DNA of 64,000 nucleotides from Mobula hypostoma (GCF_963921235.1 NC_086101.1:109802001-109866000), one strand, 5' to 3'. Positions 5,388-37,002 are shown, numbered from the stretch's first letter. The notes: generated from the sequence alone by a model not told the origin. Numbers and translations are program-made.

Positions 5388-5489
5388 TCAGATTTCTGAG
5401 TAGATGGCTTGCCCGCTGGATCTGGCTGGCTGCTGAGCTGGTGTCGAGATGTACACAGGCTGCAGGATTCCCGGGTCCAACCTGGAGAC
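5388..5489 (-). CDS. Gene A exon 6 (terminal cytoplasmic exon): VSRLDPGILQPVYISTPAQQPARSSGQAIYSEI*
   Basis: Acceptor cattaacttccccgtctgctacag|GTC; phase 0 matches the exon 5 donor; ends in a Tyr motif AIYSEI directly before TGA (5390-5388). Confidence 0.8.
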   Translation of the reverse strand, partial: VSRLDPGILQPVYISTPAQQPARSSGQAIYSEI

Positions 5490-5689
5490 CTGTAGCAGAC
5501 GGGGAAGTTAATGCCCATGCCCAGGGTGTGAATGGGGGAGGAGGGGGGTGTGGTGTTGCTGGTTATGCCAGTGGGGTTCAGGGAACAGGGGGAATCCCAT
5601 GGTTCCAGATTCGAAATTCTAGTTTATTTCTCAAGTATACACATCGTTTGTGTCAACCAGCACATTCCAGGGTGTGTTGGGACCAGTTC

Positions 5690-6010
5690 GCAAGGACGTG
5701 CAAAGGATATTTCCTATAGTTAGGGAGCTTTGGACTGAAGGGCACAGCCTCAGAGTAGAAGGACATCCCTTTAGAATTGAGATGAGGAATTATTTCCTGA
5801 GCCGGAGGGTGATGAATCTGAGGAATTCATTGGCACAGAGGGCTGTAGAGGCTACAGCACTGGATCTATTTAAAGCCAAGGCTGATAGGTTCTTGATTAG
5901 TAAGTGTGTCAAAGGTTATGGGTAAAAGACAGGAGAATGTGGTTGAGAGGGATTAGCAATCAGCCGTGATGGAATGGTTGAGCAGACTCAAAGAGCACAG
6001 TGGCATAAAT
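5690..6010 (+). mobile_element. CR1 LINE 3' fragment
   Basis: TEGHSLRVEGHPFRIEMRNYFLSRRVMNL..AVEA motif. Confidence 0.75.
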
Positions 6011-6779
6011 CTTATGATCACACATTCCAGGACTAACACAGCATGTCTGCCATAACAACACAGAACACAAGTAACAAAATAATAACAGCAAGAAAACAAG
6101 CCCCTTTCCTTCCTACCATCCACTGATATACAGTCCTTTAACCCCAGGACAAGTCTCCAGCGGACACAGACATGGGCCTGCAGATACCAGGCTTTGACCT
6201 CCACAGTGGATTCTTAGAGATATGTAGACTTGGCTCCGGCCCTGATGTTGCCTCAACGGCCAAGAGTCCAGTCTGGGAGCTCTCCATGCACTGGGTGAGG
6301 GGTGGGGGGCATGGTGTGAAGTCAAACACCCAGCGTGTTAACTACCACACTCTCCCATTTGATCCCATCCCTCATACTGATGGATGGGAATGTTCATCCA
6401 CCGCAATTAATGTTATCTTATCTTCCCCATCTGACTCTGGTCTGGGATGCAAGATGGCCCCAGTGAACCATGGTGACATTCTGCAGACCACATACAAACT
6501 TCTAAATATACCTTTTTTGAATTACTCTCATTGCAATCTTTAGCATATATGATTTCCCTTTAAGATTTATTACTAGTACTTCTTTCTTTTCTTTTGTACT
6601 TACACCATCTGTTGTCTCTTGTACAGTGGAAGTTTACCATATTTGATATGGTCTTTCATTAATTCTATTATGTTTCTGGGATTTACTGTCTATGCCACAT
6701 GAAAATGAATCTCAGGGTTGCATGTGGTGACTTTTATGTACTTTGATAATAAATTTACTTTGAACTTTCAATCGTTGAA

Positions 6780-7160
6780 AGGGAACTTCAATCTGTGTAT
6801 TCCCCTGTCTCCCTTCCCTCTTGTTCCATTACCCATTCTGGCTCCCCACCTACCTCTTCTCTTTGCCATGCCCTGGTGCTCTCCTAACTCTCTTTTTCTC
6901 ATTGCCCAGCCTCCTCTCCTATCAGATTCATTCTTCACCAGCCTTTACCCTTTCACACTTATCACCCCCAATTTCTTACTTCATCATCCCTCCCCCACCT
7001 ACCTGGCTTCACACATCACCTTCTAGCTTGTACGACTTCAAGTCCCCCTACCATCATATACAAGCTTCTACCCGCTTCCATTCAGGTCCTGATGAACAGT
7101 CCCAACTCAAAACATTGACTGTTCATTCATTTCAATAGAGCTGCTGTGAGTTTCTCCACA
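6780..7160 (+). mobile_element. Penelope-like element 3' remnant with degenerate hammerhead motif
   Basis: Pyrimidine-rich tract followed by GTCCTGATGAACAG...AAAACATTGACTG at about 7086-7121, the same layout as the intact motifs at 43452 and 50346. Confidence 0.55.
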
Positions 7161-7184
7161 ATTTTGTGTCTGTTACTCCATACC

Positions 7185-33443: not shown

Positions 33444-34339
33444 TGAAGGGTCAGTGGGTGGAAGTGCTGATCAGTCTTACTGCTTGGGGAAAGAACTGTT
33501 TTTGAGTCTGGTGGTCCTAGTGTGGATGCTATGTAGCCTCCTCCCTGATGGGAGTGAGACAGACAGTCTATCAGCTGGGTGAGTGGGATCCTTCATGATG
33601 TTGCTGGTCTTGTATATACTCTACAGTGTAAACACAGGAGTACAGAAGTAATTTTATGTATTGCACTGTACTGCTGCTGCAAAAACACAAATTTCATGAC
33701 GTACGTAAGTGATGATAAACCTGATTCTGATATGGGACTGTATTGTGGACTGAGAATGTGAAGGGGGCAGGGAGAGGGGAATCATGGTTGGGAAAAGGGG
33801 AAGGGAGAGGGGAGGGAGTAGGAATCACCAGAGAGACATTCTGTAACGATTAATAAACCGATTGCTTGGAATCAAATATCGTTCCCTGTGTCTCAGGGCT
33901 GGGTGAGTCTGCATTCTCACCAACCCCCTCGCCCCTGGCATTCCTCCTCTGCCACCTGTCCCACACCCCTCCCATGGTGCTCCACCCTTGCATTTCCCAA
34001 CATCCTTTGCTCCCACCAGATTTACAAACTTGCTCTCCACTCCACATTGACAAATACAGTACTATGCAAAAGACTTAAACACCCTAACTATATATATGTG
34101 CCTAAAATTTTGTATGGTACTGTATGTTCTTGATGGCGGGTAGGCCAGCAAACATCCATCCATATCATTCCTGTTTTCTAACTCTTGGCCCATAGCCCTG
34201 TATACGAAGATAATTCAAATGCTCACTCAGACACTTCATGAATACTGTCAGTTCCCACCACTTTCTCCAGAAGGATATTCCAGGGACTCCCTGGTCTCTG
34301 TGTGCACAGGATTTCCCTCTGCACCTCTCTTCTCCTATA

Positions 34340-34900
34340 CTCTCAGTGGCAACGTTATCAGATACCTCCTGTAGCTAATAAAGTGGCCACTGAGTGTATG
34401 CATGTGGTCTTCTGTAGCCCACCCGCTGCAAGGTTCAATGTGTTATGGATTCAGAGACGCTCTTCTGTACTCCACTGTTGTAAGGCGAGATTATTCGAGT
34501 TACTGTCACCTTCCTGTCAGCTTGAACCAGTCTGGCTGTTCTCTGCTGACCTCTCTCACTAACAAGACATTTTCACCCACAGAACTGCTGCTCACTGGAT
34601 GTTTTTTTCTTATTTTTCACACCATTTCCCATAAACTCTAGGGACTGTTGTGTGTAAAAATCCCAGGAGAGTAGCAGTTTCTGAGATACTCAAACTACCC
34701 TCTCTGGCACCAACAATCATTCCATGGTCAAAGTCACTTAGATCACATTTTCTCCCTATTCTGATGTTTGGTCTGAACAACTGAACCTCTTGACCATGTC
34801 TGCATGCTTTAATGCATTGAGTTGCTGCCACATGATTGACTGATTAGATATTTGCATTAATGAACAGGTGTACAAGTGTACCTAATAAAGTGGCCTCTGA
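34340..34900 (-). mobile_element. Tc1-derived non-autonomous element
   Basis: KCDLSDFDHGMIVGAR..SISETATLLGF (Tc1 transposase N-terminal HTH); TIR CACTCAGTGGCCACTTTATTAG. Confidence 0.85.
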
Positions 34901-35619
34901 ATGTATGCATCTCCTAATTTTGTCTACCTCTCCCAAGTCCCCTGCAACCCACTCCACCACCCCACTGCCTCTGCCCAAGTAAAACAAATCCAGCCTCTCT
35001 CTCATTATCTCCTTATTATTGACACACTCCTTCCCAGGGAGCACCCTGGTAAAACTCTTCTGCACCCTCTCCAGTGCGAACACCTTCTTTCTACAGATCT
35101 GACCATCTAGGAAACAGTTCTATGAGTTTTTTGTGGCTTAGGATTCAGAGTCAAGACCTTCAGAGAAAACTGTGACCCACCCCCCCCCCAACCCCCAGGA
35201 TCTGCCCTCTTCTCATTGTTACAAGTACAGGAGGCTGAAGACACACATTTAGCGATTCAGGAACAGTTTCTCCCCTCTGCCATCCAATTTTTGAATGGAC
35301 CGTGAACCTATGAACACTATCTCGCTACTTTTTATTTCTGTTTTTGCTATTTAATCTAGCTACTTAATATAATGTACATACTTATTATAATTCACAGTCT
35401 TTTTCTCTCTGTTATTACGTATTGCATTGCACTGCCACCGGAAAGCTATCAAATTTCATGACATATGCCGGTGATATTAAAACTGATTCTAATTCTGAAG
35501 TCTCTGCCACTGCAGCCGAGATAATGCAGCAGTCTTTTCAAACCGCACATATTACAACCTAGAACAGGCTGCATTGAGACACCTAACATGGTACGTAGGG
35601 ATGAAAGAAATGGTCTTAG

Positions 35620-36030
35620 AACAGTGAACATTACAACGTACAGCTCTCTGGGAGAGAAAGCTCCCTCTCAGAGCCCCTCTAAACTCCTTACCCTTCACCT
35701 TGACCTTTTATCACCCTGTGGATATTTCCTGTCCGCACCCTGGTGGTCATGTGTACCTCAATCCTGTAGCTGCACCTCTCTTCAGGGGAACGCAGGCCCA
35801 GACCCTCCTCATCACCGTCCCATACGACATCCGCATCCTCTCCAGTGAAATCACCTCCACCCCTGTCTTCCTCAGCACTACATGGTCCTGGCCTCAATAA
35901 TGCCCCCAGTGTCTTTCAGCTCACACTTATCCGGATTAAACGCCCTTAGTGATTTCTCAGCCAATTTCACCAACGTATTGAGATTCTGTAATGACAAGAC
36001 TACCCTCCACACTGACAACAACTCCACTGA
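35620..36030 (-). mobile_element. Old CR1 RT fragment
   Basis: DAKISGVV.SVEG and QNLNTLVKLAEK..FNPDKCE on the minus strand. Confidence 0.65.
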
Positions 36031-36869
36031 TCTTTGCGTCGTAGGACGCGGAACACTACAGCACAGTACAACCCTTTCGGCACATGATGTTGTGCCAACC
36101 TTTAACCGACTGAAGGATCAATCTAAACTTTCCCTCCTGCATAGCCTTCATTTTCCATCATCCACATATCCATCAAAGATGTTCTCAAATGCCTAGAGTT
36201 CTGTACCTGCCTCCACCACCACCACTGACAGGACATTCCTCACAGCCACCACACTCTGTGTAAAAAAAACTTACTTCTGACATCCCTCTGTACACTTTTC
36301 TCCAATCACCTTAAAATTACTGCCCCTTGTGTGAGCCATTTTTGCCCTGGGGAGAAGTTTCTGGCTGTCCACTTGTGCCTCTATCAAGTCACCTCTCATC
36401 CCCCTTCTCTCCAAAGAGAAAAGCCCTAGCTCGCTCAACCTTTCCTCATCAGACCTGCTCTGTAATCCAGACAGCGTCCTGGTAAATCTCCTCTATGATC
36501 AGGAGAGGAATACAGAACAGTACAGACACTTTGATGCACTATGCTGTGCTGACCTTTTAATCCACTCTAGGACCAATCTAAACCTTCCCTCCTACCATAA
36601 ATAACCCTCATTTTTCTATCATCCACATGTTATGCTAACAATAAACTACACAAGGTTCTGCAGATACTGGAAATCAAGTGTAAAATACACAAAGTGCTGG
36701 AGGAACTCGTCAGGTCAGGCAGCATCTATGGAGAGGAATAAATTGTCCAGTTCTGATGAGGGCTCTTAGCCTGAAACATTGACTGTTTATTCCTCTCCAT
36801 AGATCCTCCAGCATTTTGTGGGTGTTACACGTTTTATGCTTTACACTTGTAAATAGATCAGACCTTTAC

Positions 36870-37002
36870 CTGGATCAAGGCCCCCACAAGCATTGATGGT
36901 AGTGTACATCCACAGAAAGGCTACCCAGGTCATCTGCCCTTTGCTGGGAAGCGGCTGCTCGTCAGAGCTGCTCTTTTCATGCGTGCCATTCAGTGCCTTC
37001 AT
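36870..37002 (-). CDS. Gene A exon 1 (leader): MKALNGTHEKSSSDEQPLPSKGQMTWVAFLWMYTTINACGGLDP
   Basis: Phase-1 donor CCAG|gtaaag; hydrophobic core WVAFLWMY; in-frame upstream TGA at 37053-37051. Alternative start Met24 at 36933. Possible upstream acceptor at 37054. Confidence 0.75.

Follow-up and report, generated by a model that had tools for sequence, protein, structure and literature searches.

In this work, we analysed a 64,000-nucleotide (nt) stretch of Mobula hypostoma (the window, by which the whole stretch is meant) that carries on its minus strand a gene for a single-V receptor; all motifs named in an earlier sequence-only reading lie on this strand. The exons were recovered by a scan for open segments of the six lengths that this reading had proposed, bounded by AG...GT. 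When joined, they comprise 864 nt and translate into an open protein of 287 amino acids (aa), with AG/GT at all boundaries and phases of 1,1,1,1,0 (Table 1). The six-exon minus-strand model of the earlier reading was reproduced exactly and matches at 287/287 residues the RefSeq protein P0159, "uncharacterized protein LOC134347327 [Mobula hypostoma]" (287 aa), which surfaced in a protein search with the Hypanus orthologue as query. Furthermore, the annotated range of LOC134347327 in GCA_963921235.1 covers 31,615 nt, the exact span of this model. The locus is the M. hypostoma gene LOC134347327, which encodes a type I membrane receptor and already stands as a RefSeq model without a name or a described function. 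We consider it probable that the gene is a member of an elasmobranch orthogroup placed beside CD28H/CD28HL1, that its product comes from five of the exons, and that the immunoreceptor tyrosine-based inhibitory motifs (ITIMs) of its shark counterparts have been lost in Mobula and Hypanus.

Table 1. Positions of the gene's parts and of the intron 2 gap, counted in the window.
Feature	Position	Strand	Details
Exon 1, leader	36870..37002	-	133 nt; last three bases CAG
First ATG, start in RefSeq and in the sequence-only reading	37002-37000	-	G at -3
Second ATG, opening MTWVAFLWMYTTINACGGLDPG	36933-36931	-	start position of the orthologues; C at -3
Exon 2, VJ-type V-set immunoglobulin (Ig) domain	32116..32475	-	360 nt; Pfam V-set; RNA contigs without mismatches
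Assembly gap (475-letter N run) in intron 2	28906..29380	.	124 nt from the exon 3 acceptor
Exon 3, acidic Cys-free stalk, uncharged transmembrane segment VLQTLLPGLLASGLVFCLLCSTYSLY and KGKPFT stop-transfer	28659..28781	-	123 nt
Exon 4, doubtful	13064..13141	-	78 nt, 26 codons, GEYQI; starts CTGGGA
Exon 5, cytoplasmic LLSGSPSNNQGVDHFSKSAEDN	10183..10250	-	68 nt; starts GACTAT; conserved with Hypanus MRSESPSNNQGVDCSSKSTEDN
Exon 6, VSRLDPGILQPVYISTPAQQPARSSGQAIYSEI then TGA (5390-5388)	5388..5489	-	102 nt; conserved with the Hypanus C-terminus
Probable 3' untranslated region (UTR)	4360..5387	-	AATAAA at 4385-4380; RNA word shares

The V exon served as query of an exhaustive HMMER search that found orthologues in sharks and rays, all of them labelled uncharacterized or hypothetical. 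Their V domains share 69% identity with that of Mobula in Hypanus sabinus, 56% in Pristis pectinata and 44% in Heterodontus francisci, followed by Scyliorhinus (37%), Chiloscyllium (36%) and Rhincodon (35%). A word-indexed protein search, made with the Hypanus orthologue and then with the family alignment, matched members of this orthogroup only. The V-domain tree unites the seven elasmobranch orthologues in a single group whose basal branch is weakly supported (82/13), and the batoids branch as (Pristis, (Hypanus, Mobula)). The shared V-domain pattern is Y-Y-C-x-x-Q/H-V/I-E-K/R-P-x-P-I/V-K/R-x-G-x-G-N/E-G-T. The closest counterpart, Hypanus isoform X1 (239 aa), parallels Mobula exon by exon through the leader (MTWVAFLW...GGLDPG), the V domain, and the stalk with the transmembrane segment, and in its tail SESPSNNQGVDCSSKSTEDN corresponds to exon 5 and ...DPGILCPVYISTPTQQPAMSGEQAIYSEI to exon 6. 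The Mobula gene is therefore best read as the batoid orthologue within an unnamed orthogroup that spans sharks and rays.

The gene is expressed. A 562-nt RNA contig of run X1 (record 1) joins 32116-32457 directly to 28600-28781 with no mismatches, which is the predicted junction of exons 2 and 3; the RNA check that had been proposed for the gene model thus gave a positive answer at this junction. No extra residues occur at this joint in the orthologous proteins. As the contig connects 32116 to 28781 and the orthologues add nothing between them, the mRNA is continuous and in frame across the assembly gap, and the gap conceals no coding exon. Two other contigs, X2 record 10 and X3 record 17 (the latter derives from a close relative and has 2 mismatches over 124 letters), end at 32478, beyond which they carry 53 and 32 loose letters, respectively. 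Between this position and the exon 2 acceptor there are three bases, CAG, the same as the last three of exon 1; a stop here fits splicing of exon 2 to exon 1. The alignment of X2 record 8, which is spliced at the exon 3 donor, runs exactly one base beyond this exon, which makes G the first base of the exon that follows. In the RNA contigs, splicing takes place at the exon 2 acceptor as well as at the exon 3 donor. At the other end of the gene, the word shares of 4360-5489 (exon 6 with the putative 3' UTR) were 0.87 in X1, 0.31 in X2 and 0.03 in X8, broadly parallel to those of exon 2 (0.55, 0.53 and 0.00, respectively). The X1 contig also runs through the exon 3 donor into intron 3 for at least 97 nt (28562-28658), and the version that it represents would end 18 codons on. 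This read-through may be a retained intron or a short-tail isoform ending in ...KGKPFTGRCNPTDCWGNYSASCQH and a stop. A short-tail isoform, P0002, is annotated in Hypanus too, from a different exon; no counterpart of the exon that gives Hypanus isoform X2 its short tail was detected in the window.

The sequence-only reading described the protein as a leader, a single VJ-type V domain, an uncharged transmembrane segment and a tail with tyrosines, and this architecture was borne out. Exon 2 matches Pfam V-set with E = 3.5e-10 and is the one strong V exon in the window, the one hydrophobic span (residues 174-199) carries no charge, and AlphaFold2 returned a V-fold. The V exon also holds the five N-x-S/T sequons and the extra pair of cysteines (C96 and C103 in 287-aa numbering) that had been pointed out. 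The FG loop of this VJ-type domain, YYCEIQVEKPAPVRRGYGNGT, reads YYC-EIQV-EKPAP-VRRGYGNG. The stalk is short, acidic and without Cys, and the cytoplasmic tail has about 60 residues (85 with exon 4) and ends in Y-S-E-I. One V domain, one transmembrane segment and a cytoplasmic tail is the combination by which CD28-family members are recognised (PMC11599192), and it is present here. The AlphaFold2 model of the V domain was built on a 51-row V-domain alignment and reached a predicted local distance difference test (pLDDT) score of 91.4; an earlier model from a 7-row alignment, with a pLDDT of 46, was discarded. Among Swiss-Prot models, Foldseek placed CTLA-4 at ranks 2-4 and CD28 at ranks 6-7, with the highest TM-score (0.83) for human TMIGD2, and among AFDB clusters 'CD28-like' and 'CTLA-4' came out on top. 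We take this ranking as a sign of resemblance and not as proof of family.

The CD28 family was recently widened to nine members, each defined by motifs of the FG loop and the tail, and its hallmarks are that the V domain is single, that a J-like GxGNGT is present and that the FG loop has P-x-P (Quiniou et al., 2024; PMC11599192). None of the supplementary alignments of that survey contains the strings VEKP, VERP or IERP, so the orthogroup lies outside its set. Likewise, none of six identifiers of orthologues, namely five RefSeq protein accessions plus Hypanus LOC132396365, is mentioned in the main texts of the literature searched, supplements being outside that search. The word 'undescribed' in the sequence-only reading hence stands for the literature, by the identifier search and the survey supplement, and falls for the databases, where RefSeq carries the identical model. 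We regard the gene as a literature-undescribed member of the CD28H-like single-V receptors, of moderate interest.

To place the V domain, a profile of the orthogroup was used to rank proteins outside it by their best single-domain score, and a maximum-likelihood tree of 51 V domains was calculated. The highest scores, 80 bits each, were those of an elasmobranch multi-V receptor (P0008) and of sturgeon CD28HL1 (P0066), followed by CD28HL1 of the great white shark (P0052, 72 bits) and a shark CD28H (P0080, 58 bits), while NKp30-like proteins and V domains of T-cell receptors (TCRs) or Ig remained at 33-44 bits. In the tree, the orthogroup meets the CD28H/CD28HL1 'E-I-P' clade and the multi-V clade at an unresolved three-way node, and the resulting 35-row clade is apart from the NKp30-like rows (support 76/93). 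Closeness to TMIGD2/CD28H, recognised by the sequence-only reading from the FG loop, is thus upheld, with CD28HL1 and CD28H as the nearest named relatives by profile and TMIGD2 as the best structural score. These comparisons would put the V domain next to the CD28H/CD28HL1 branch within the CD28 family; strict membership of the family is not established by them. Six synteny blocks have been published for the family (fsd1/stap2; man2b, kiaa0232, tcb1d14, as printed; slbp/tacc3/tmem129; prkab1b/pla2g1b/tmem233; pudp/sts/anos1; muc4/tnk2) (PMC11599192). None of their marker genes occurs in the window, which holds the receptor gene, transposon open reading frames (ORFs) and one weak V-like ORF. 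Within 10 kb of the locus there is no other called gene in Mobula, and in Chiloscyllium there is one, of 201 aa and without a Pfam match.

The multi-V receptors bear on how strictly the family assignment should be taken. These elasmobranch proteins (P0008, P0020, P0038, P0107, P0023 and P0036), which are not in the window, have two or three V domains and are annotated as 'uncharacterized', 'protein turtle homolog B-like' or 'prostaglandin F2 receptor negative regulator-like'. They share with the orthogroup the extra Cys pair, the K-P-x-P FG loop, the GNG, and a homologous transmembrane segment and tail, and differ from it in the number of V domains and in forming a well-supported clade of their own (98/91). 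The transmembrane and tail similarity of the single-V and multi-V genes of Heterodontus has E = 5e-5. Moreover, the multi-V tails have three tyrosines at similar spacing, VLYAVL/AYAEI/SVYTVV in Heterodontus and VVYSMV/AYAEI/TEYAVV in Cetorhinus. A single-V and a multi-V gene are found on one contig or chromosome in Pristis (LOC127586521 and LOC127586539) and in Heterodontus (XP_067879962 and XP_067879862), and on the same chromosome in Hypanus, so related inhibitory-type V receptors may be clustered in elasmobranch genomes.

It is conceivable, if rather improbable, that the receptor is not a strict CD28-family protein and is instead the single-V member of an elasmobranch V-set inhibitory cluster akin to NITR, SIRP and LILR, with an FG loop that is merely CD28H-like. 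The presence, on the orthologue's contig or chromosome in three species, of multi-V paralogues that share the extra Cys pair, a K-P-x-P loop and a three-tyrosine tail speaks for this, as does the fact that they equal CD28HL1 on the orthogroup profile and share its three-way node. It is opposed by the separation of the clade of orthogroup, multi-V and CD28H/HL1 'EIP' genes from NKp30-like and other VJ domains, weakly supported as that is, and by the single V, the J-like GxGNGT and the P-x-P FG loop, which are the hallmarks of the 2024 survey. As a separate observation, two proteins labelled 'immunoglobulin kappa light chain-like', P0081 of Pristis and P0148 of Carcharodon, have a CD28H-type V domain with an E-I-P-P-P loop that clusters with CD28H/CD28HL1 in the tree, and then an apparent C1-set domain, judged by eye. 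P0081 goes on into a hydrophobic segment and a tail, and the predicted P0148 ends without one.

With the orthogroup placed beside CD28H/CD28HL1, the composition of the Mobula product can be considered. The claim of a complete six-exon gene held insofar as all six exons are present and in frame, and did not hold for exon 4 and the first 23 residues, which lack orthologue or RNA support. For five of the six exons, support comes from the orthologues of Hypanus, Pristis, Heterodontus, Chiloscyllium and Rhincodon. In the tailed orthologues of these five species, nothing aligns with the 26 residues of exon 4, and none of them has the 23 residues ahead of the second Met; Hypanus P0151, for example, begins with MTWVAFLWTYSILNACGGLDPG, which is a start at the second Met. 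For this reason, the product best supported has 238 aa, and we regard five exons with a start at the second Met as most likely the main form. No RNA joints were seen at 13064 or 13141, where contigs can show presence and not absence, and the low contig depth around exon 4 is also found in X8, the run without exon 2, so that depth here does not track expression of the gene. As the exon that follows exon 3 in X2 record 8 starts with G and exon 4 starts with C, this spliced contig cannot continue into exon 4; the first base of exon 5, G, agrees with it. Contigs of four RNA runs aligned to 10100-13250 gave a depth of 0 at exon 5, and the case for this exon therefore comes from orthology.

That the 287-aa model of RefSeq and of the sequence-only reading is the main product in Mobula, with exon 4 as a recently gained cytoplasmic cassette, is in our judgement unlikely. 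An automatic annotation pipeline did arrive at the identical six exons, the acceptor and donor sites of exon 4 are good, this exon keeps the frame and is unique sequence with no repeat copy in the window, and the first ATG has G at -3, the second C (Table 1). These points are countered by the lack of both the exon 4 residues and the N-terminal extension in every orthologue, by the G with which the X2 contig proceeds from the exon 3 donor, and by the missing joints and a depth that is shared with X8. Exon 4 is thus doubtful, unproven and at best a lineage-specific cassette exon, and in the RefSeq annotation it and the upstream ATG are flagged here as a probable over-prediction.

By comparing its motifs with those of the described members, the orthogroup appears to fit none of the nine. 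It is nearest in plan to CD28H (TMIGD2), CD28HL1 and CD28HL2, which likewise have a single VJ-type V domain, a transmembrane segment and a tyrosine tail spread over several cytoplasmic exons, and an FG loop of the form YxC-[polar]-xxx-E-x-P-x-P followed by GxGNGT. The published CD28H-like FG pattern is YxC[E/K/Q/N]xxxE-I-P-x-P, and the pattern given for the whole family is YxC...(E-I-P or P-P-P)...GxG (PMC11599192). The Mobula loop YYCEIQVEKPAPVRRGYGNG keeps the spacing, Glu, P-x-P and GxG, and in all seven orthologues the invariant Ile of E-I-P is replaced by K or, in sharks, by R; the extra C'-C'' Cys pair and the tail motifs are further differences. The Mobula tail tyrosines stand in the contexts YQIR, YIST and YSEI with no YxN, and the tail contains none of YxN[VIMT] (CD28H), Y[E/D]SF (CD28HL1), YxNx (CD28HL2) or EYEDM (CD28X); Y[E/D]SF occurs in none of the seven orthologues. 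The epaulette-shark CD28HL2 in the survey supplement (PMC11599192) is clearly unlike the Chiloscyllium orthologue P0152, and as both species are Hemiscylliidae, the two are separate genes.

CD28, CTLA-4 and ICOS resemble the orthogroup in the V-domain fold and head the cellular proteins in Foldseek. The Mobula receptor differs from them by the lack of MYPPPY/PPP, of the stalk Cys for covalent dimers and of YMNM/YVKM, and by having five or six exons, against four in the CD28, CTLA-4 and ICOS genes. Motif inspection of P0159 found no MYPPPY/PPP loop, no stalk Cys and no YMNM/YVKM/YMFM tail, which are the features of these three (PMC11599192), and it confirmed the earlier statement that MYPPPY, YMNM, YVKM and the PD-1 pair of an ITIM and an ITSM (immunoreceptor tyrosine-based switch motif) are all missing. 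PD-1 is like the Mobula receptor in its monomer-type, Cys-free stalk and several cytoplasmic exons, and its ITIM and ITSM-like tyrosines also occur in the shark orthologues and multi-V paralogues (e.g., TEYAVV). It differs in an FG loop without conserved prolines, while Mobula has neither (I/V)xYxxL nor TxYxx(V/I).

CD28HL3 deserves a closer comparison. This ITIM/ITSM-bearing member is known from bichir, gar, sterlet, cypriniforms and siluriforms, was 'not detected in Chondrichthyes', and has an FG motif [IAVL]-P and a tail of the form V[VLI]YAAL/V - x(27-33) - V[TL]YS[ED][VI], with [I,V]xYxxL ... VTYxxV as its ITIM/ITSM signature (PMC11599192). We consider it quite doubtful that the orthogroup is its chondrichthyan orthologue. 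The shark tails (VLYNEI - x - VYSEI) do resemble this pattern in that VxYxx[LVI] is membrane-proximal and YS[ED][IV] distal, the C-terminal part of Pristis (ATYSEIRL) can be set beside VLYSEIRIK of catfish CD28HL3, the bichir FG loop xIPSPILRRSGNG equals EKPAPVRRGYGNG in length and P-x-P, and the slot is open, no shark CD28HL3 being reported in the survey (PMC11599192). However, ITIM-like motifs are short and convergent, the orthogroup has [KR]-P in place of [IAVL]-P, Mobula retains AIYSEI alone, and the likeness is one of motifs. Furthermore, no CD28HL3 was recognised among the top-150 V-domain matches inspected, in which CD28HL1 and CD28H were, and the window holds no marker gene (prkab1b, pla2g1b, tmem233) for a synteny comparison. 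NKp30 as nearest kin was rejected by its 33-44 bits against 58-80 for CD28H-like proteins and its place in another clade, and PD-1 orthology by the unrelated FG region of shark PD-1, YGCLELYFS...

Turning to the tail of this CD28H/CD28HL1-like receptor, the ITIM consensus is (S/I/V/L)xYxx(I/V/L) (PMC12151841). None of the Mobula tyrosines qualifies, namely QAIYSEI (A at Y-2), QPVYIST (P at Y-2, T at Y+3) and TGEYQIR (G at Y-2), and the sequence-only reading was right to call AIYSEI merely ITIM-like for its Ala at Y-2. Canonical ITIMs are found in shark orthologues, as VLYNEI and SLYTQI in Heterodontus, where the order is VLYNEI - x - VYSEI - x - SLYTQI, and as VLYSVI in Chiloscyllium (VLYSVI...IYSRI). 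The central Y-S-E-I is present in four of the six tailed orthologues, is replaced by YSRI in Chiloscyllium and has lost its tyrosine in Rhincodon. The three batoids Mobula, Hypanus and Pristis lack the membrane-proximal ITIM and have only A-x-YSEI, and the Mobula and Hypanus proteins stop directly after YSEI. The suggestion that the receptor is possibly inhibitory gains from the shark ITIMs (VLYNEI, SLYTQI, VLYSVI) and loses from the want of a canonical ITIM or ITSM in Mobula itself. An inhibitory role via SHP-type phosphatases is plausibly ancestral, and unproven in Mobula. As no Mobula tyrosine conforms to the consensus, the Mobula receptor may be a weakened or rewired signaller, or one that acts through partners.

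We hypothesize that the FG/CC' face of the V domain would bind a ligand at the cell surface, perhaps a protein of the B7 family or one like HHLA2, after which Src-family kinases would phosphorylate tyrosines of the tail. SHP-type phosphatases would then be recruited in sharks by the ITIM-type tyrosines (VLYNEI, SLYTQI, VLYSVI), and activation would be dampened. In the Mobula/Hypanus lineage, with those ITIMs gone and the C-terminal AIYSEI kept, signalling may be weaker or rewired, e.g., to another SH2 protein. In this respect, we assume by way of speculation that the Mobula pY-S-x-I resembles the preferences of Csk- or Src-type SH2 domains; the terminal -S-E-I-COOH presumably fits a class I PDZ ligand, which is speculation as well.

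Several observations weigh against the reading given at the outset. The tree ends in a three-way split, and CD28, CTLA4, ICOS, PD-1, CD28HL2, CD28HL3 and CD28X were left out of it. Foldseek E-values hardly separate CD28, CTLA-4, CD8 beta and TCR V domains. V-set domains are broadly alike, and antibody light-chain V domains (VL) and TCR alpha chains head the sequence and structure searches of the PDB; by sequence, the V exon and the family profile matched nothing but these two kinds of chain there, which is uninformative on the family. Mobula has no canonical ITIM or ITSM, its Y-2 residues being A, P and G. Exons 4 and 5 are without contig coverage in four RNA runs, and the RefSeq model, which includes exon 4 and the first ATG, possibly draws on further evidence.

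The surroundings of the gene are rich in repeats. The V exon is flanked by very high-copy repeats (31000-32000 and 32800-34600) with an RNA contig depth of 10^4 to 10^5, and many RNA contigs jump from 31222-31230 to 31860-31873. Introns and flank at 14000-27500 and 38800-61000 are full of retrotransposon ORFs, i.e., long interspersed nuclear element (LINE) reverse transcriptase and Gypsy-like pol. A second assembly gap is located at 47903-48087, and an AT-rich stretch (GC content 0.31-0.37) at 24-30 kb. The weak V-set-like ORF at 63324-63770 on the minus strand (E = 3.5e-4, 17 bits against the 51-domain V profile) is the neighbour gene noted by the sequence-only reading; it has no canonical first-Cys context and is not a close paralogue of the receptor.

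If the preferred reading is true, the early history of co-stimulatory and co-inhibitory receptors would gain a branch from an elasmobranch-wide CD28H-like gene whose shark versions have ITIMs, and likewise from the multi-V paralogues. Rays without ITIMs and sharks with them would then be a natural test case. We put forward, very tentatively, the further idea that the orthogroup is a tenth member of the CD28 family or the 'missing' chondrichthyan CD28HL3, and that with its multi-V paralogues, whose tails have the order ITIM - YxEI - ITSM-like (TEYAVV), it formed an ancient inhibitory checkpoint module whose ITIMs were later lost in Myliobatiform rays. It would mean that this inhibitory module dates to early jawed vertebrates, and that the loss of the ITIMs converted or disarmed the receptor of rays.

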